This document shows, one piece after another, positions 1,077-14,761 of a stretch of DNA of 64,000 nucleotides. A program made the translations under genes and the position numbers. The DNA comes from Perkinsela sp. CCAP 1560/9 (taxonomy: Eukaryota > Protista > Euglenozoa: Kinetoplastea): the NCBI GenBank assembly GCA_965644495.1, contig CBFFSA010000011.1, forward strand, positions 372,001-436,000, given 5' to 3'. Positions within the stretch are counted from its first letter, which is position 1. Every line of letters begins with the position of its first letter. Below the pieces are notes generated by a model, which was not told where the DNA came from, did no database searches, and saw only the letters and a program-made list of their open reading frames with translations.

Positions 1077-3071
1077 ATGTATGTGCGAAAAAAGCACACG
1101 AAACAGAAACGGATGCTACTGCGATCCTTATACAACTTTTCTTCTCTCACACCTTTTTTACAAAGGCACCGCAAAGTAGTTGTACAACTTCCCGAAGACC
1201 TTCTGCCCTATGCCCTCCTAATTCAAGAACTAATTAAAGAAGAGTGGAACCATAGTCCTCAGAACGAAACTCTCTGTGCTAAAGCTGAGTCGTTAGGAGC
1301 ATGTGGCATGACATGTGCTTGCACTCCTAACATGGACGAACAGGGTGTCGCACTAAATACACTGGACGAACTAGCTTGTCCAAAGCCGAATGTTACCTGT
1401 ATCACCGAGAAGAAATCTTCCTGTGATCAAGGAAAATACGGAGCGCCGTCTATTGCGATTATGGCAGACACAACATTTACCTCATGTTGTCCCGATGAGG
1501 TATCCGCTGAACACCTTCCCGGGGTTGATGGAATTGTACACTTTGGAATGGATTGCGGGATTAAAACTTCCCGAATACCCATCCAGTATTGCAGACGAAG
1601 CTTCTCGTCTACGTTTCTTGCAAAATGGGAAAGCGTTTTAGAAAACGAGCTGAAGTCTGTATTTCATACTTTAGAGAGCTCTGAACAAACATCTGGGGAT
1701 TTCATTTCGAACGCAAAGGATGGCATAGCATCATTACGTATTTTGAGTATTGTTCTTGCTGCGGAGGCATATGAGCTCCTACCTATTATACGAACCGTAG
1801 CCAACCAACTTGCGGATGAGGCCAAACAACTCGGATGGGAATTCATTGTCGGTTCTACCACTACAAATGAAACGACCCCAGAGGGTTTCGATACAATACG
1901 CCTGGGCGCACTTCAGATCCCTCTGAAGGCCTCGGTCTATTTCCTTGTCGATCCTACGCTATCCGATGGTTCCCACGTGGGTGCTCTCCACGGGGCTTCC
2001 GAGCGTGCAACGATCTCCAATCCCGAATCCCACCCGCTCTTTTTTCTTACCGGATTGCTCGCCACACACTACGGCGTCCCTCTCCACATCTCCTCGGTTC
2101 GTTTTCCTTCACACGTAAAGGACGAAGCCCGATCGGAGTCGTTCGTCTCTTCCCCTACGGTGCCCAGCAATGACGGAGTAAAAAGTCTACTCCCTATTGA
2201 TGAATTACACAACACCACCGCGAAAATGAATCGTTCAAAACTATGGGCTTCACACGAAGAGCGTGTTGCTGTAAAATCAGCACGATCCAGCGATGCAGAA
2301 TTGGACCCCTGCCGACGTCGTGCGACCCAATCTGTCTATCTGCGTGCGAAACTGCGGTCCTCGCTTGCGGTAGGGATTGTGGTCCATACCCTCAGTGCGG
2401 TCGGGTCGAATCTTTTAATCCGCTACTTGTATGATGTGTTAAAACGAGCAGGCAAGCGCCCGTACGTGTTGTATACGGGACGTCTTAATGTGCCGAAACT
2501 GGCCAATTTTACCGCCGATTTAGATCTCTGTGTGCTGGTGGGGTGTGCGTACCACGGCGTAATGAGCTGTTCACAATCCAGGGAGTATCCGATACCTGTT
2601 CTCACCCCGATGGAGGTGTGGACGGGATTGTTTGTGGATAACTACCCGGAATTAAACGTTTGTATGGGAAGTGAGGTAGATCCTGCGTTCCTGTCCCGCA
2701 CAAACGATGTTTCGCCCCTTTTTGAATCCTCCCCTGTGCCCACACTTCCACTGATTCCCCATGCGCTGCGTTGGTTTCGACACGCCTATGAAAAGCTGGG
2801 CATGTCAAAGCCAGAGGAAGACACATCGAATGTGGTAACAGGAGGAAACTGTTCGTCACAAAATACCCTTTCGCGAGGGATTAAGTCTTCCGCACTAACA
2901 GTGGCCCCTGCACTCTCACTTTCGACAATAACACGTTGGCACTCGCGCAGCTACAAGGGGTTAGACCCACAAGTGGGGCAGACGCCTGTACAGACAGAGA
3001 TTTCAGAGGGCATGAGTGGGATACCCAGCGTTTACGACCATGAGAAGAGCGAGGAAACAGCATTGCAGTAA
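1077..3071 (+). CDS. DPH2: Diphthamide biosynthesis protein 2
   Basis: Motifs VVVQLPEDLL, ADTTFTSCCPDEVSAEH, IVHFG, GRLNVPKLANF, PVLTPME, and C-terminal RSYKGL...EGMSGIPSVY. Confidence 0.88.
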   Translation: MYVRKKHTKQKRMLLRSLYNFSSLTPFLQRHRKVVVQLPEDLLPYALLIQELIKEEWNHSPQNETLCAKAESLGACGMTCACTPNMDEQGVALNTLDELACPKPNVTCITEKKSSCDQGKYGAPSIAIMADTTFTSCCPDEVSAEHLPGVDGIVHFGMDCGIKTSRIPIQYCRRSFSSTFLAKWESVLENELKSVFHTLESSEQTSGDFISNAKDGIASLRILSIVLAAEAYELLPIIRTVANQLADEAKQLGWEFIVGSTTTNETTPEGFDTIRLGALQIPLKASVYFLVDPTLSDGSHVGALHGASERATISNPESHPLFFLTGLLATHYGVPLHISSVRFPSHVKDEARSESFVSSPTVPSNDGVKSLLPIDELHNTTAKMNRSKLWASHEERVAVKSARSSDAELDPCRRRATQSVYLRAKLRSSLAVGIVVHTLSAVGSNLLIRYLYDVLKRAGKRPYVLYTGRLNVPKLANFTADLDLCVLVGCAYHGVMSCSQSREYPIPVLTPMEVWTGLFVDNYPELNVCMGSEVDPAFLSRTNDVSPLFESSPVPTLPLIPHALRWFRHAYEKLGMSKPEEDTSNVVTGGNCSSQNTLSRGIKSSALTVAPALSLSTITRWHSRSYKGLDPQVGQTPVQTEISEGMSGIPSVYDHEKSEETALQ

Positions 3072-3347
3072 GCTGAAAGAAGACGTACGTACTGTACGCA
3101 CTGTATGTAAGATGCCAAAAGATTATTGTTATAAGAAAATAACACGAAAGCCGAAATACTTATATTTGATATTTGGGCCGCAGTTTTGTACACTTTTGCG
3201 AAATTTATAGCGCCATCTTTAGTATTTCATCGCTCTCCTGCTTCATTTGCCTCTCTAAGCGTAGTCACCTTTCGTCCACTCTCGACCATTCACCTCTCCT
3301 TATCATTTCCAAATCTACCCTCAACGAACCCCACCAAAAAAAAGAAC

Positions 3348-4817
3348 ATGTCGCCCCCCACCCCTACCCTCTTAACTGAAATCCAACACGGACACGATGC
3401 CGGGATTAGCTATGTGAAGTTCGTCTCTCTGCGCCCCAACGCACCTCTTTCCTATGACGCTCTACTCGTCACCTCTCTTGATGGCACGGTGTCAATATGG
3501 GAACGCGGTCCCGCTGCTTCAGCCTCTGGGCGGTCTTCCCATAAAAACATGCCTTCTTTTTCCTGTCTCACACGATGGGGAGCGCCCTCGGAGGGTTTAG
3601 GCCCTTCTCATGAGGAACAGGAGCGCAGTATGATTAACTGTGCGTGTTGGTTAACCCCGACAGTATGGTCTCCAGGTTCCCTCCTGCTGGGATGGGAGAC
3701 CGGGGCGATTTCTCAAATCGTTTTTACCGGAACGACCCTTTCAGAAATCTCAAAAAAGATTTTGTGGCATTCCCCTGAAGATGGAGGGGTGAATGCGATC
3801 ACAAAGGTATTGGATCTCAACGCGTGGTTCAATCCTAATCCTCGAGATGAAAATCCGGATCCTCGAATCAGGGATTGGTGTTGTTTCGGTACCGAGAACG
3901 GGCGGGTGGGGATTTTAGATCCCCGCAGACCGCACGCGTTGCTCGCCTCGATTCAACTTGCATCGGACATTACCTCACTTTGTGTGATGCCGCTTAACGA
4001 GAAGATGAGAGAAAAACAGGAAGACCAAAGGTTTGAATTTTCACAAACGGGTCTCTTGTTTGTGGGAGAGGGCTCGGGGACGTTGTCTTGTTGGGCTTCA
4101 CCCCTTCTGAGTGGGAATGATCTTAAAAAAGAAAGAGGGGAGCCGAGGGAGGTGGTTGGCTCCGATGGAATTGAGCTGAAACAAGTGAAGCTACACACGG
4201 ACGAGACGGAGTACGGTATTGGGATCAATGGAATGGTAGGTTTGCCTGTTGAAGCGTGGGATGAAAAATTAAGCTGTGTAGAAACAAAGGAACGCCATAC
4301 ACAGGGTGGATTTAGGAGTCCTCTAGCAGGCAGTGTGGCTCGACTGCTGCTGTATTATGGTACTTCATGTGAAATTCGGGAGCTTCGTAAGATGGATCCT
4401 CTAAAAATTGGACTGGAGTGTGATGATGCTTCAATGGCAGATTTTGGCCTTGAATTACGTTCCACCGATGCTCGGCTATGTAGTGCACATGATGCATCGA
4501 GAGTACATAGCGACTACGTACGTTCCTGTGTCCGTGTAAACGATTCTAAAGGGTGTTGCTTGCTAACTTCTGGCGATGATGGGCGAATCTCTGCATGGTC
4601 GTACTCTACGAAATCTATGAGATCTTTTTACAAAGATGTCTGTAACGAAACTTGGCCATTGTTTGAATTAGCGGCTGATCAGGATCCCATAATGACTATC
4701 GATGCCATAGTCAACACACCCACGCATGAACGTCGGGAAGGAAATAACTCTGAAGCAATTGTTTTTGTCAGTGGTTCAGAGGGTCCCTTTCTACGAGTGT
4801 GGGAGTGGCCTTCATAG
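3348..4817 (+). CDS. WD40-repeat protein
   Basis: GH...LLVTSLDGTVSIWE, HSDYVRSC...LLTSGDDGRISAWS, FVSGSEGPFLRVWE; ATG at 3348 follows a polypyrimidine tract. Confidence 0.75.
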   Translation: MSPPTPTLLTEIQHGHDAGISYVKFVSLRPNAPLSYDALLVTSLDGTVSIWERGPAASASGRSSHKNMPSFSCLTRWGAPSEGLGPSHEEQERSMINCACWLTPTVWSPGSLLLGWETGAISQIVFTGTTLSEISKKILWHSPEDGGVNAITKVLDLNAWFNPNPRDENPDPRIRDWCCFGTENGRVGILDPRRPHALLASIQLASDITSLCVMPLNEKMREKQEDQRFEFSQTGLLFVGEGSGTLSCWASPLLSGNDLKKERGEPREVVGSDGIELKQVKLHTDETEYGIGINGMVGLPVEAWDEKLSCVETKERHTQGGFRSPLAGSVARLLLYYGTSCEIRELRKMDPLKIGLECDDASMADFGLELRSTDARLCSAHDASRVHSDYVRSCVRVNDSKGCCLLTSGDDGRISAWSYSTKSMRSFYKDVCNETWPLFELAADQDPIMTIDAIVNTPTHERREGNNSEAIVFVSGSEGPFLRVWEWPS

Positions 4818-5023
4818 GTAAAACAACAAAACGACGACTAGGATAGTACTCTGCTGAAAATTTTCCTCAGTGCATTCTTTAAACACACCTTTAATTAAAA
4901 CTCCCTTTCTTTTACCAAAACGGTGTTTTTTTAAAAACCTTTTTTATATCATCTACAACCATCTTATTTTTTTGGTCTTTTGAAGTATCTTGCCACAAAC
5001 TTTATTTCCCCGAAACTTTTTCA

Positions 5024-5392
5024 ATGCTGTGGTCGGTAGTGCAATCAGTCTTCGGTTGGTACGATGTGGCGAATGGGAACCCAAAAGAGATTCCTGTAAA
5101 TTACGTCTTCTCCAACGGATATCACAGTTCTCAGCCCATAGCTGTTTCGAATACTGTCCCGACACAACTTCGTACCTTTCCACGAACTCCCAGTCTTGCG
5201 CGTTCTTCGTCGCTCTTTACACTTGAACGACAACCTTCTACGGGACTCTTGCATTCACCCCTCCCTCTGGCACCCGGGGAGAGTTACCTGACCCCCCACC
5301 GTTACTTGTGGTTTTGTTATGGATCATACGTGCTGCTTTCGCTTTTTGCAATGCTTTTCATTGCATTTGTGCGGAACTTGTTTTTTGGATAA
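5024..5392 (+). CDS. Small hypothetical protein with a C-terminal hydrophobic (putative TM) segment
   Basis: 122-aa ATG ORF on the coding strand with hydrophobic tail YVLLSLFAMLFIAFV. Confidence 0.4.
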   Translation: MLWSVVQSVFGWYDVANGNPKEIPVNYVFSNGYHSSQPIAVSNTVPTQLRTFPRTPSLARSSSLFTLERQPSTGLLHSPLPLAPGESYLTPHRYLWFCYGSYVLLSLFAMLFIAFVRNLFFG

Positions 5393-5574
5393 GGGACGCC
5401 TTGGGTTATCATTCAGAAACCTTTGTTACTTAAATCCTTCGGTGGCTTCACAGGGATTTTATTGGAGCGAAGGAGAAGCGCATTTTTCGTAATAAAGATG
5501 TATATGATACGACTATATATATTGTACGTATACGGGCTATAAAACCTTTTCTCATTTCCGTTTTTCGATATCCA

Positions 5575-5902
5575 AAACTCATTCTTCCTCCGGATGGTCA
5601 CTGGCAAACCAAACGCTTCACAGACAGATTTGGAAGTTTCGAGACGGACGTCCTCTACCAGTTTCCGCTTGTCCAAGTCGGCACAACGCGTTGTTTCCAA
5701 CCTCTGGGTCGACCAATCTTACGTCATCACGGCTTACCCAAGAGGTGTAAGCCGTGCAAGGGAGCTGGTTCCCTAAGGGGGGTCGGTCTTCCGAGTACTG
5801 GCCAAGACGGATCTCGACCCAGCCTCTTAGAGTGAGGCCACCAGGTATTATGCGGGAGGCGAGAGTCGAGGTTGCCGTCTGCTTCAAGTTCTTGCCCACT
5901 TA
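5575..5902 (-). repeat. SINE-like dispersed repeat, copy 1 (5'-truncated)
   Basis: Reverse complement aligns over about 300 bp with 45800-46155 (e.g. GGCCTCACTCTAA, GGGAACCAGCTCCCTT, CCTCTTGGGTAAGCCGTG, CAAGCGGAAACTGGTAGAGGACGTC, CTTCCAAATCTGTCTGTGAAG, TTGCCAGTGACCATCCGGAG). Confidence 0.8.
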
Positions 5903-5905
5903 CTT

Positions 5906-6030
5906 GAGGGGCCGCGGGTGGGGGTCAAAACGAGATCATGATACACGAAAAAGACCGAATAATAACCACTCACGCGCGAAATACTTTTTTATGTAGTCGT
6001 GAAATCACGCGAGATCATACTTAATCAAGA
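5906..6030. mobile_element. Partial copy of the GAGGGG(C/T)-terminated MITE family seen at 19049
   Basis: Starts GAGGGGCCGCGGGT and contains CGAGATCA(T/C) subterminal repeats like 19049-19116. Confidence 0.5.
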
Positions 6031-6123
6031 GCTGACGTGAATGAAAGTACTATGAAAGTAATATGTAGACGCGTCCTTGATCTCACAAAATTGTTTCAGA
6101 ATATTACATTGTAACTGCTTCAA

Positions 6124-9846: not shown

Positions 9847-11473
9847 TGAGGGAGTTGCTATGCCCTGTCCATGGTATCGTGTTCAGGGGAACAGCAATCC
9901 CCCATTATCTCGGCGTAGTAAACACGCCTTGGCTTGCCTGGCACCACGATTGCCGAAAAAAAAAATTCGGTTCATTTCGCAGCCCAGTTGCTTCCCACTT
10001 AAGGGGCCCGCTCCCACAACCGAGTGATCTCCCCGGCAGCACGGTTTTACCCATGCGTCGAGAAGGCTGGGGTGTGAGACCAGGGTGCATTAGTAGAAAA
10101 TTTTCGGAAGAAGAAATACGGAGATTTTACTGCATAATGGCGTAGAAAACTTTGAGTGCAATAGAACAAAGGGTTGGCGTAAACCTTTGGTTAACGTTTT
10201 TTCTTTTGGGGGGATTTACTTTCTTTGCCATTCCTCATGCTATCAACTCATAAATTTTACCAATTACTCTAGATTCGTATATTTGTTTCCTCCAGTTACG
10301 CTTTCCATAATTCTTACATAGGGTCTACATGTACATCGCCAGCTCTTAGAGCTGAGTTCAGGAGTGCTTCTTTTCTGTCATATTTATGCTCTTCTCGAGT
10401 CAACCCGTCCGCTGGGTTTTCTTTAGATTTAATATGGAAAATTCGAAAAGAATGTCCATGTTTCCCTATCTGTTCATCCATTTCCGTGATCTCATTACAC
10501 ATCGATCTCGTAACTGATGTACGCCCCGATTCTGATGGTATTTCACTCTGGTGAAACCAGTGTCACATATCAGCGGATAAAAAGTTTACGTTGGGGAAAT
10601 TCTCTATTACATGGATAATTTCAGCGATAGCTGGAAAATTCAAGCAAGGAGGGCGATTGCACATCTCATTTGGTGGTGTTCCATCCGCAATACTTCTTGA
10701 CAATTCCTCCGCTTTTGGTACCTCAAAGTAACGTAAATATAAACGTGATGATGATGATCGAGAGTCGTGTGCCACACGTAGCACCCCGCATTCCACGAGT
10801 TCTAATAAATGTTGTAACCAAACCCCGGAGGATAGTTTCCTTATTTTCCCGTGAAAAGGGGGACAATTTATCTATTCAATAAAATTTTGGGTACTTTTCA
10901 ATGCCGTGCAACATTTGATACCCCATGGTAAACCATGTTTTAGGTGTGTTGATGTAAAGAAACCAAGTTGTTCCTTCAGTATTTATGATGAATCTTCGTT
11001 AACAAAGAATTCGGGTATAAATGCATCAAGCAAAGCAACCGTTGCTTTTTTTTCTAGTTCTCTTTTTTTTACTCCACCGAATAAGCACTAACGCGTTCAC
11101 TATCGTCGGTCTGAATTTCTGATTCAATATTCCTACCAGGCGAGATATCCTGAAAAGCCGTATTCCGAGCGTCAACCCGAGACGTCCGGTGTGTGCCTCG
11201 ATACTTCCATATGGGAGGATCTATAACGCACGAACAATACTCCCCCCCCCCCTTTGTTTTCTCTCCCCCGAACACTCCATATTTTTCAACTTCAAATCTT
11301 CTTAGGGGGGAGGACTCCCGTTAACATGCCTCAAGTGAGGATTAAGGAACTATTTCTTTTTTTTCGGCAATCGTAGTGCCAGGCAAGCCAAGGCGTGTTT
11401 ACTACGCCGAGATAATGGGGAGTTGCTGTTCCCCTGAACATGATACCATGGACAGGGCATAGCAACTCCCTCA
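9847..11473 (-). mobile_element. Internally deleted retroelement (DIRS/VIPER-like RT-RNase H) bounded by about 118-bp inverted terminal repeats
   Basis: 9847-9965 is the near-perfect reverse complement of 11355-11473; the interior carries RT and RNase H fragments on the minus strand. Confidence 0.75.
10314..10815 (-). pseudogene. Reverse transcriptase N-terminal motifs fused by deletion to an RNase H C-terminus
   Basis: One frame reads LLELVECGVL...YFEVPKAEELSRSIADG...N...FLSADM*HWFHQ..IP (RT F.VPK..R.I.D..N and D...F.Q motifs), then HIKSKENPADGLTR (RNase H end motif). The YxDD region is missing. Confidence 0.78.
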
Positions 11474-12576
11474 TTATCACTCCTTCGTAAGCACCATGTT
11501 ACCGGGACCAAGCCCTAGGTGCCAGGCATGCCATAGCACGTCACAACTTCCCACCCTCTCCCTTCTGTTTTTATTCTGTTTTCACTTCATTAAAAAAACA
11601 TGCTGGAGAGGAGGATGTATAGCGCAAATGGAACGGCAAGTGTGCCCCGAAGGACACGGAGCCCATGGGCCTCCCAGCACGAATGCTGGGGCGGTGGTAC
11701 CCCGAAGGGTACGGAGCCCATGGGCCTCGTTACAGAGGATGTATAAATGCAACGGCAAGTGTGCCCCGAAGGACACGGAGCCCATGGGCCTCCCAGCACG
11801 AATGCTGGGGCGGCGGTACCCCGAAGGGTACGGAGCCCATGGGCCTCGTCACAGAGGATGTATAAATGCAACGGCAAGTGTGCCCCGAAGGACACGGAGC
11901 CCATGGGCCTCCCAGCACGAATGCTGGGGCGGTGGTACCCCGAAGGGTACGGAGCCCATGGGCCTCGTTACAGAGGATGTATAAATGCAACGGCAAGTGT
12001 GCCCCGAAGGACACGGAGCCCATGGGCCTCCCAGCACGAATGCTGGGGCGGTGGTACCCCGAAGGGTACGGAGCCCATGGGCCTCGTCACAGAGGATGTA
12101 TAAATGCAACGGCAAGTGTGCCCCGAAGGACACGGAGCCCATGGGCCTCCCAGCACGAATGCTGGGGCGGTGGTACCCCGAAGGGTACGGAGCCCATGGG
12201 CCTCGTTACAGAGGATGTATAAATGCAATGGCAAGTGTGCCCCGAAGGACACGGAGCCCATGGGCCTCCCTGCACGAATGCTGGGGCGGTGGTACCCCGA
12301 AGGGTACGGAGCCCATGGGCCTCGTTACAGAGGATGAAGTACTGCCAGGCCGGGACCAAGCGAATTGATGTGTGACATTTTCAGGCGTGTAAGATTGTTT
12401 AGTTAAATGGAGCTAAATGTAGTAGTTATACTGGACACTAGAAACAAGTAATTCAATTATATTTAGTTTATAATCGTGCTATAGATGTATTGAAATCTTC
12501 ACCCTCACACTCCGCCGAATATGGCGGTGCCGGGCTTGGGACCGGTAACAAGCGTGTTTACGAAGGAGTGATAATG
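11472..12576. mobile_element. Non-coding element with 44/45-bp imperfect TIRs enclosing a 119-bp tandem array
   Basis: 11472-11515 CATTATCACTCCTTCGTAAGCACCATGTTACCGGGACCAAGCCC versus the reverse complement of 12532-12576 CATTATCACTCCTTCGTAAACACGCTTGTTACCGGTCCCAAGCCC (first 19 nt identical). Confidence 0.75.
11611..12336 (-). repeat. Tandem array, 6 x 119 bp, each unit a diverged dimer of structured half-units
   Basis: Units start at about 11611, 11734, 11853, 11972, 12091 and 12210; GGAGCCCATGGGCCTC occurs 12 times; the minus strand folds into three UUCG hairpins per unit. Confidence 0.95.
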
Positions 12577-12706: not shown

Positions 12707-14761
12707 ATGTACCGCGCGTTTTCCATTACTCACAAGTCCTGGTCTTCCTCCTGCGGGACGACTTCCTCACATGCGTCCAGTCGATACCACCTCACGGGTA
12801 TGGCACAGCCCTTAGCCAAAATTCTACACGCCAAAGCTACCCTTCATCGTGAAAGGATTCAAAAACTACGAAAGGAGAAGGGCAATGAGAGTCTGGGACC
12901 CATCACAGTTGACTCGTTGTATAATGGCGCACGTGGGCTCACGTGTCTTCCCCATGAGCCTTCGACGTTGGACCCTCTGGAGGGCATTCGCTACCGTGGT
13001 ATGAGCCTTGCGGCGTGCCGAAACAAACTGCTAGATTGCTCCGAGATTGGCACCGAGCCGCGGCCGGAGGCGTTGTTCTGGCTCCTGCTCACAGGAGAAC
13101 TCCCCCATGCGGATGAGCTGCGTGAGCTCTCTGCGGATCTCCACAGGCGAAGCACCGAAAGTACCACACTACCCTCGGTGCTGTCCTTTCTCGAGACCCT
13201 CCCTCGCTCCATGCCCCCGATCACACAACTCACCATCGCACTGCTCGCGCTCCAACCCCACTCCTTACTCGCGCTCGCCCAAACGGAGGGCAAAGCCACC
13301 AAACGAAACACCCCCGATTTCATGCTCGAGGACGCCCTTAACTGTGTGGCCTGGGTCCCCGTCCTGGCCGCCGCGATCTACCGCAGGCACTGTGCTCCTG
13401 TGGATTCCAACGACACCCTCCCCCCTTCCGAACCAACCCACAACATCTCCTCAACAGAATCTCCCCTCTTCGAGACCACACCCTATTCTATTTCAAACCG
13501 TGAAACTCATGAGGGGGAAACCCATGAGGGTAACAACAATAACCATACGAACAACGCTCATCCTCTAAACCCCTTCCCCCCCTTATCCCACCCACGACCT
13601 CAAAATCCTCAAGACCACAACTCTCTTCACCTTCACGACAACACCTTGGAGAGCTCACAAAACACACGACCCACGAGTCGTGCTCCAAATTCAAAGTCGG
13701 CTCTCTCCTCCGATCCCTCTTTGGGGTCTTCTTGTGAGTCTTCTGGTGAGTCTTCTGGTGAGTCTTGTGAGTCTTCCGAGGCTCTGGGCTCGGACTGGAC
13801 CGCGGCCTTTGCCCGTGGACTCTCTCTCCACGGTTCTGGGGCCCACGACCTGCTCCGGCTCTTCCTCTTCGTCCACGCCTGCCACGACGGGGGGAGTCTC
13901 TCCACCCATGTGGCCTCGATGGTCGGGGGGGCGCGGGGGGATGTGTTTCTGTGTCTCTCCAGCGCCTGTGCCGCCCTGGGCGCCCCCGGGCACGGGGGGA
14001 ACATGGCGCAGGGGCTGGAGTTTTTACACGCCCTGCAGTGTACGTTGCGGAGGAAGAATAGAGGGGTTGGAGGGGGAGGTTTAGAGGTTGGGGGATTTGC
14101 CCCGCATTCGGCTACGAAGGGGGTAAATGCCTCCATCTCTTCTTCCTCCTCTTCTTCCCCTCTTTCTTTTTGTTCCTCTTCTTCCTCTTCTTCTTCTGTT
14201 TCCGGGGACGAGGGTCTCCGTTCGATTCTCTCCGAACTCACGTGGGAGTATTACCACAACGGAGCGGACCACATCCCCGGCTACGGTCATGCGGTGCTTC
14301 GAGGCCCCGATCCGCGATACGATCTGCTCTATCGCTTCGCCTCGCAGCACTGTGGGGGTAACCCCTACTTTCGCATTCTCCAGCAGATCCACCCGATCAT
14401 GCCGGAGGTGTTAGCGCGGCATGGGCGCGGGGGTAATCCGCATGCAACATCGGATGCCATCTCGGGGCTGTTGTTGGCCCATTACGGGATGAGGGGAAGG
14501 CAGTCGTTGTCTTCTTCATCTTTTTCTTCATCTTCTTCTTTTATTCACTTCTTTCCCGTGCTGTTGGCCGTAAGCCGACAGCTCGGGATTGTGAGTGGGT
14601 TGGTTTGGGACCGCATGGGTCGACGCCCGGTGGAACGGCCGCGGTCGGTGTCGGTGGGGGAGCTGGGGCGGCGGTTTCAAATCACAGAGAGGGGGGAGGG
14701 GAAAATGGGGCAGAGGGGGAAAATGGGGGAGAAAGGGGAGAGGAGGGAGAAAGAGGGGTAG
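12707..14761 (+). CDS. Divergent eukaryote-type citrate synthase with low-complexity insertions
   Basis: LGPITVDSLYNGARG, EPSTLDPLEGIRYRG, PEALFWLLLTGE, HACHDGGSLSTH, PGHG, IPGYGHAVLRGPDPRY, DAISG, PVERPRS. Confidence 0.85.
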   Translation: MYRAFSITHKSWSSSCGTTSSHASSRYHLTGMAQPLAKILHAKATLHRERIQKLRKEKGNESLGPITVDSLYNGARGLTCLPHEPSTLDPLEGIRYRGMSLAACRNKLLDCSEIGTEPRPEALFWLLLTGELPHADELRELSADLHRRSTESTTLPSVLSFLETLPRSMPPITQLTIALLALQPHSLLALAQTEGKATKRNTPDFMLEDALNCVAWVPVLAAAIYRRHCAPVDSNDTLPPSEPTHNISSTESPLFETTPYSISNRETHEGETHEGNNNNHTNNAHPLNPFPPLSHPRPQNPQDHNSLHLHDNTLESSQNTRPTSRAPNSKSALSSDPSLGSSCESSGESSGESCESSEALGSDWTAAFARGLSLHGSGAHDLLRLFLFVHACHDGGSLSTHVASMVGGARGDVFLCLSSACAALGAPGHGGNMAQGLEFLHALQCTLRRKNRGVGGGGLEVGGFAPHSATKGVNASISSSSSSSPLSFCSSSSSSSSVSGDEGLRSILSELTWEYYHNGADHIPGYGHAVLRGPDPRYDLLYRFASQHCGGNPYFRILQQIHPIMPEVLARHGRGGNPHATSDAISGLLLAHYGMRGRQSLSSSSFSSSSSFIHFFPVLLAVSRQLGIVSGLVWDRMGRRPVERPRSVSVGELGRRFQITERGEGKMGQRGKMGEKGERREKEG

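Follow-up and report, generated by a model that had tools for sequence, protein, structure and literature searches.

DIRS1-like retroelements are organized around two termini and two adjacent internal complementary regions (ICRs), which overlap at a circular junction of 2-3 bp; a right extension is also present, and the four repeats have a core of 10 nt or more in common (PMC3266345). For DIRS-1, experiments have shown the ICR to be essential, with a role after first-strand synthesis; truncated elements are served by the proteins in trans, and a 3' hairpin is the proposed primer (PMC7192593). VIPER and TATE, the comparable elements of kinetoplastids, have split direct repeats (A1 ... B1 A2 B2), and no ribozyme has been described in them (PMC6681497, PMC12278014). 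Twister ribozyme variants, for their part, head the Perere-3 elements of Schistosoma, which belong to the retroelements without long terminal repeats (non-LTR) (PMC8501958). The element considered here lies in a 64,000-nt stretch of DNA from Perkinsela sp. CCAP 1560/9 (hereafter the window), which corresponds to positions 372001-436000 of contig CBFFSA010000011.1 in the 21-Mb assembly GCA_965644495.1, the assembly used for all genome-wide searches. It occupies positions 9847-12576 and is probably a single copy, with internal deletions and dependent on proteins in trans, of a kinetoplastid retrotransposon of the tyrosine-recombinase (DIRS) order; it is read on the minus strand and combines a twister with an ICR. 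A KMP-11 match in the genome (150 bits) identifies the host as a kinetoplastid.

An initial annotation of the window, made from its letters alone, had divided this interval into module A, with reverse transcriptase (RT) and RNase H remnants, and module B, with a 119-bp array, each bounded by inverted ends of its own.

The insertion unit and its termini

Queries made from module A and from module B match identical loci in the assembly. At least five copies, with 92-96% identity, have both ends in common and unrelated flanks, and in each full copy the homology, read in the minus-strand sense, starts exactly at 12576 and stops at 9847. The flanks of seven copies contain no target duplication. In addition, an empty site was found in contigs of X2 and X3, two other sequencing runs labelled as the same organism, in which 9846 is joined straight to 12575 (2728 nt skipped, with two letters ambiguous). 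The target held one TG (CA in the element sense), and the occupied site has TG at each border. As this empty site spans A and B, both were inserted together, recently enough for the insertion to be polymorphic. The interval 9847-12576 is a single insertion unit with fixed ends, without target duplication beyond the common CA.

Several elements of the initial annotation proved accurate at this level. The motif CATTATC-N8-GTAARCAC, reported at four ends, is present at exactly four places of the window (9903, 11395(-), 11472, and 12554(-)), far above the 0.01 occurrences expected from shuffled sequences; genome-wide, it has 71 matches, compared to 4 with a reversed control. The inverted ends of both modules are real, and their arms are longer than first described: 130 nt with 92% complementarity (9847-9976 / 11344-11473), and about 45 nt (11472-11515 / 12532-12576). 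The 119-bp array, the GTGCCRGGC boxes, and the junction palindrome (11418-11470) were all found where they had been placed.

Of the four motif 'ends', two are the termini of the element, left and right, and the other two are the halves of a single ICR. In the element sense, the 5' end opens with CATTATCAC... and the 3' end closes with ...AACTCCCTCA. On the plus strand, the internal junction (11455-11494) reads the 3' end and then the 5' end, with a CA overlap, so that 11344-11516 constitutes the reverse complement of the joined termini, that is, an ICR. Its two halves overlap by a CA (11472-11473), which is complementary to the circle junction. An alignment of the short and long families reveals a core of about 50 nt common to all four repeats, and the junction palindrome is the right extension, a hairpin. 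The ICR lies at positions 1061-1233 of the 2730 nt of the window copy, and at about 1185-1348 of the 6947 nt of a longer relative (L061), upstream of the open reading frames (ORFs).

At one other locus (L004/L047, C1:784871-787153), a single copy has about 600 bp inserted inside the right ICR arm, and its leader ends 55 nt past the ICR, which suggests a rearrangement or an insertion at the ICR.

The predicted twister ribozyme and a possible repair signature

The P1, P2, and P4 stems, the two pseudoknots, and the conserved core letters of a twister are all present at the 5' end of the element. An alignment of 18 distinct 5' ends, issued from several subfamilies, was used to build a covariance model (R1). 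Across these 18 sequences, the pairs of P1, P2, P4, P5, T1, and T2 are formed in 91.9% of cells, versus 35-48% when the partners are slid, and six of the seven P5 pairs display compensatory changes. The model scores 118.9 bits at the window twister and has at least 60 matches in the genome. Rfam model RF03160 (twister type P1) aligns over its full length to 12498-12564 (-), with 28.2 bits and an E-value of 8.3e-5 for a 77-nt query. With longer queries, Rfam returned no twister from 7 kb at E <= 1, and only a local P4 match (RF02684) from 161 nt. The sequence comparison shows a 5' end that folds as a twister conserved with compensatory changes, for which cleavage is predicted. The bipartite motif at this end had been interpreted as a recombinase site. 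In the predicted fold, the N8 core of CATTATC-N8-GTAAACAC is the 5' strand of P1, and GTAAACAC comprises the cleavage loop (with the cleavage site) and the P2 strand.

The a-type motif, borne by the 130-nt arms, was considered as a second ribozyme and rejected: it has no R1 match, the long family does not retain its candidate P1, and its P4 lacks 8 nt. Contig C4, which matches 150 nt of module B, contains neither twister nor arrays in these matches.

The comparison of termini with ICRs provides a signature close to the predicted cut. Terminus and ICR agree at positions 1-19 in eight pairs, drawn from four subfamilies, the core specific to each subfamily changing in step in both copies; at position 20, the terminus has A and the ICR has G in all eight. 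Genome-wide, 20 of the 21 AAACAC sites coincide with twister-model matches; none of the 19 AAGCAC sites appears among the model's listed genome-wide matches (at least 60), and one of them, re-scored (C1:787099), reached 27.5 bits, versus 119 for the window twister. Both the limit of identity and the state of position 20 are as expected if the letters 5' of the cut were recopied from the ICR at each cycle, and those 3' of the cut inherited via the RNA.

A further difference between the two copies was observed in each subfamily: the ICR reads CCGGGACC where the terminus has CCGGTCCC, the central four letters being reverse-complemented (11497-11515 vs 12532-12550 in the window). Were terminus and ICR to pair in the RNA, a bubble of 4 nt would result; moreover, the T1 partner of the twister is lost from the ICR copy.

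Leader array, coding capacity, and relatives

Based on its predicted fold, the array is a leader of UUCG-capped hairpins. The 119-nt unit folds at -61 kcal/mol in the sense orientation (z -5.7, compared to -3.4 for the opposite strand), and the UUCG hairpins of the window copy, 17 in number, are all in the sense orientation, the antisense strand having none (autonomous relatives have 8-10). Other subfamilies have UUCG-hairpin arrays in the same position, with periods of 78, 36, and 124 nt; their sequences are unrelated and their hairpins always in sense, and the two sub-repeats of the 78-nt unit differ by a compensatory stem pair. As 119 nt is not divisible by three, the array is likelier to act as RNA than to code for protein. 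The 3'-terminal hairpin is kept in three subfamilies, with different stem letters.

Three side observations concern these arrays. In runs X1-X3, the contig word depth over 11619-12325 is tens of times above that of the element body (in X1, up to 22701 vs about 50-300), which suggests many more array units than element bodies in these samples, contig depth being a poor measure. In one contig of run X1, six other letters stand in place of the 816 nt between 11489 and 12306; this contig may represent an array-less leader variant or another subfamily. Finally, a 225-aa open frame (L061:7089-7766 (-)) spans the 78-nt hairpin array, with a 26-aa repeat, a TTG start, and no family match, and is probably not a gene.

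Of the RT and RNase H, only fragments are left in the window copy, which is, thus, non-autonomous. Its array and RT had been placed in the same sense on the minus strand, which the RT/RNase H remnants and the sense-strand hairpins bear out. Coordinates of all the features are gathered in Table 1.

Table 1. Features of the element (window coordinates; all sense statements refer to the minus strand)
Feature	Position	Strand	Description
Whole non-autonomous element	9847..12576	-	2730 bp; 5' end 12576, 3' end 9847; TG (CA in sense) at both borders
Left terminus (lTer, arm b1)	12532..12576	-	Inverted repeat with lICR; overlaps 5' half of the twister
Twister ribozyme, type P1 with extra P5 hairpin	12497..12565	-	Predicted cut between 12560 (U17) and 12559 (A18), 17 nt inside the element
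Tandem array	11626..12336	-	6.0 units x 119 bp, 98% matches (TRF); each unit with 3 predicted UUCG-capped hairpins in sense
Left half of ICR (lICR, arm b2)	11472..11516	+	Inverse copy of the element's first 45 nt; identical through position 19
Right half of ICR (rICR, arm a1)	11344..11473	-	Inverse copy of the element's last 130 nt
RT fragment, N-terminal part through motif A	10563..10796	-	77-aa ORF; tblastx match to RT of full-length relative
RNase H C-terminal fragment	10314..10502	-	Ends in NPADGLTR; ADG aspartate invariant in the family
Right terminus (rTer, arm a2)	9847..9976	-	9903-9976 = inverted-repeat core homologous to left terminus, without 8 nt of twister P4
3'-terminal hairpin (right extension)	9847..9904	-	Ends in ...CUCA; predicted fold -27.8 kcal/mol, z -4.4

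The same arms, of 126 nt (96%) and 45 nt, are found in the relatives L061, L062, and L070, which are about 7 kb long and encode, on the same strand, an unnamed ORF (347 aa), a tyrosine recombinase (293 aa), and RT/RNase H (585 aa), in this order. The recombinase and RT/RNase H ORFs support the earlier suggestion of a kinetoplastid tyrosine-recombinase retroelement. No DDE transposase and no target-site duplication, which would point to an ordinary DNA transposon, were found, and RT and arrays accompany these ends elsewhere in the genome.

In the full-length relatives, the Pfam matches of the 585-aa ORF, to RVT_1 (22.9-28.5 bits) and RVT_3 (up to 22.2 bits), are weak. At E <= 0.001, this ORF has 985 relatives, the nearest of the named ones being a Bodo saltans protein (26-28% identity), and the nearest Atlas clusters are from Euglenozoa. 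RT motifs A-C are conserved, and the RNase H catalytic residues D, E, D, and D are invariant. The ORF stops about 30 residues past the RNase H ADG motif, with no further Pfam match (no methyltransferase domain). Motif C (L061:1677-3434 (-)) reads (W/Y)-x-D-N, not Y-x-D-D, the D and N being invariant in all eight aligned relatives, which include the Bodo saltans protein and metagenome proteins at 25-41% identity. For the 293-aa ORF, a R..K..HxxR..HY pattern is invariant in four sequences of 51-99% identity; its Pfam matches, Phage_int_SAM_4 (E 7e-4) and Phage_integrase (E 9e-3), are weak, as are its top Foldseek matches, to Cre (E 4e-3). Word-index protein searches returned six matches apiece, almost all in one ENA assembly.

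A sister family, L069 (ENA ERZ24900291 ctg3751l, 1663-6043), has the same ORF order, with 41% identity in the RT and 51-52% in the recombinase. No twister was detected there with model R1 in the 14 kb examined. L069 lies directly downstream of an ORF with a zf-RVT domain, the latter from a different retroelement. In the window, a citrate-synthase-like ORF of 684 aa (12707-14761 (+)), in which long Ser-rich and low-complexity inserts are present, starts 131 nt from the 5' end of the element, on the opposite strand.

Proposed cycle, rival explanations, and known systems

The following cycle can be proposed. The element would be transcribed inside a long host transcript, in which the twister would cut between U17 and A18, freeing the element RNA and removing the host sequence, together with the first 17 nt of the element. 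RT, provided in trans for the window copy, would then make the cDNA, for which the 3'-terminal hairpin may be the primer. The 3' end of this cDNA would anneal to the ICR and be extended on it, which would restore the 17 lost letters and build an end-to-end junction. Lastly, the circle thus formed would be inserted by the recombinase, through a crossover at a target CA. A broader idea, which we put forward only tentatively, is that twister and ICR form one device suited to a promoter-less recombinase retroelement on polycistronic transcripts: the ribozyme would set the 5' end of the RNA, and the ICR would rebuild the 17 letters and the circle junction. The UUCG arrays would be cis signals for packaging or for RT recruitment, multiplied in defective copies that compete for the proteins of the autonomous ones.

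If the proposed cycle is correct, it would provide a clear biological role for the canonical twister ribozyme beyond non-LTR elements, and would constitute a second, independent case of kinetoplastid retroelements escaping polycistronic transcripts by means of a ribozyme. It would also offer a natural test of the long-standing ICR repair model, as the ribozyme would fix the length of the missing piece at 17 nt, and the expected signature is already visible in the sequences. The DIRS1-type ICR itself is found in kinetoplastids, where only split direct repeats were described, and the empty site shows recent movement of the family.

Several points weigh against the retroelement with twister and ICR as outlined above. 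The ICR is located near the 5' end and does not adjoin the right terminus as in DIRS1-like elements; given this position, the DIRS-1 model may not carry over step for step. No contig carries a circle junction in direct orientation. The RF03160 score (28.2 bits) is below the gathering score of 67.2, which is attributed to the missing P3 and the inserted P5 hairpin. No compensatory pairs were found among the 119-bp units of the same family, which vary too little. The tyrosine-recombinase assignment, of moderate strength, relies on weak profile matches, the motif, and a low-confidence AlphaFold model (mean predicted local distance difference test score, or pLDDT, of 53.7, poor in the catalytic half), and the recombinase profile had no match among the sequences of solved structures.

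Among the rival explanations, the most substantial accepts the architecture and treats the twister as a relic, or as serving another purpose: the 5' end of the RNA would be set by a promoter or by polycistronic processing, and the ICR would repair a transcript shortened in that other way, as in DIRS-1. The sub-threshold Rfam score, the changes at U17 (as in the L061 copy) or in P1 in some copies, and a sister family without an R1-detectable twister at 41% identity would all fit. Nevertheless, the fold is kept with compensatory changes across subfamilies, the model has at least 60 matches in the genome, and the terminus/ICR identity ends 2-3 nt past the predicted cut in four subfamilies, which an unrelated RNA start would not predict. 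We consider this explanation unlikely.

The two other explanations concern the relation between A and B. In the initial annotation, these were separate cassettes with recombinase sites of their own, B being an RNA cargo or template and its array possibly the product of rolling reverse transcription. Each module does have inverted ends sharing the core motif, and the number of array units differs between copies, but A directly adjoins B in all full copies, as well as in the autonomous relatives of several subfamilies, and the inner arms, placed back to back, jointly form the complement of the joined outer ends. The empty site, which lacks A and B together, contradicts separate cassettes: B is the 5' leader, and A is the body with the 3' end. 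Independent mobility of B fares no better, as the B-only loci examined have no inner arm and are truncated copies, and no complete B with both arms was found apart from A. Nothing supports a rolling origin of the array, whose unit number merely varies from 1 to more than 10. Separate cassettes are, thus, very improbable, and what stands of the initial interpretation is the recombinase retroelement, the common sense of array and RT, and a layout other than that published for VIPER or TATE; the two modules, the cargo, and rolling reverse transcription are not supported. Least credible of all is that a short B-type element inserted, by chance or target preference, at the end of an A-type one. Recombinase elements often insert into their own copies, as noted for DIRS-1 (PMC7192593), but the A-plus-B order, with arms diverged in step, recurs in the short family and three long subfamilies, the 2-nt junction overlap is precise in all copies, and a single empty site covers both parts.

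The preferred reading, a DIRS-order retroelement with twister and ICR, can be compared with four known systems. As in the DIRS order, RT and RNase H, a tyrosine recombinase rather than a DDE integrase, and insertion without target-site duplication are found. Of the traits specific to DIRS1-like elements, the paired ICRs with a junction overlap are present, and the 3' placement of the ICR and the methyltransferase are not. The resemblance to DIRS1-like elements (PMC3266345, PMC7192593) includes termini complementary to adjacent ICRs that overlap at a short circular junction (here CA), a right extension past the inverted-repeat core, a short core common to all four repeats, insertion without target duplication at a site sharing the junction letters, the gag-like, recombinase, and RT/RNase H genes, and defective copies mobilisable in trans. 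In contrast, the present family has its ICR upstream of all ORFs, at about 1.1-1.3 kb from the 5' end, and not next to the right terminus; its true inverted-repeat core, of about 50 nt, is short and has diverged, and no methyltransferase domain is present. The twister in the left terminus, the UUCG-hairpin array in the leader, and the DN of RT motif C also distinguish it.

With VIPER and TATE, and the short VIPER derivative SIRE, the family shares a kinetoplastid host, the ORF order (a first ORF without recognized domain, then recombinase and RT/RNase H), the lack of target duplication, and short non-autonomous derivatives. It is set apart from their published layout, as had been suspected from the window alone, by its inverse termini and ICR, without split direct repeats. 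None of the latter was found in L061, in which the only direct repeats are internal tandem repeats and the terminal repeats are inverse. A full-text literature search returned no paper linking a ribozyme to DIRS, Ngaro, or VIPER elements, and none describing the present family.

The ribozyme itself resembles twister type P1 (RF03160, clan CL00120) in P1, the UAA cleavage loop, P2, an exact P4 with its loop, the GAGGG strand, and both pseudoknots. It differs by the absence of the optional P3 stem, the added P5 hairpin, and a score under the gathering value. As in ribozyme-headed non-LTR elements, a self-cleaving RNA at the 5' end would free the element RNA from an upstream co-transcript, which suits the polycistronic transcription of kinetoplastids. 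Those elements, however, are target-primed and cut at the element border, with a P1 strand provided by the target duplication, whereas the cut predicted here falls 17 nt inside a recombinase element, whose internal inverse copy could restore the lost piece. Judged by its sequence, the element is probably a defective tyrosine-recombinase retroelement of the DIRS order, with a twister at its head and a DIRS1-type ICR.

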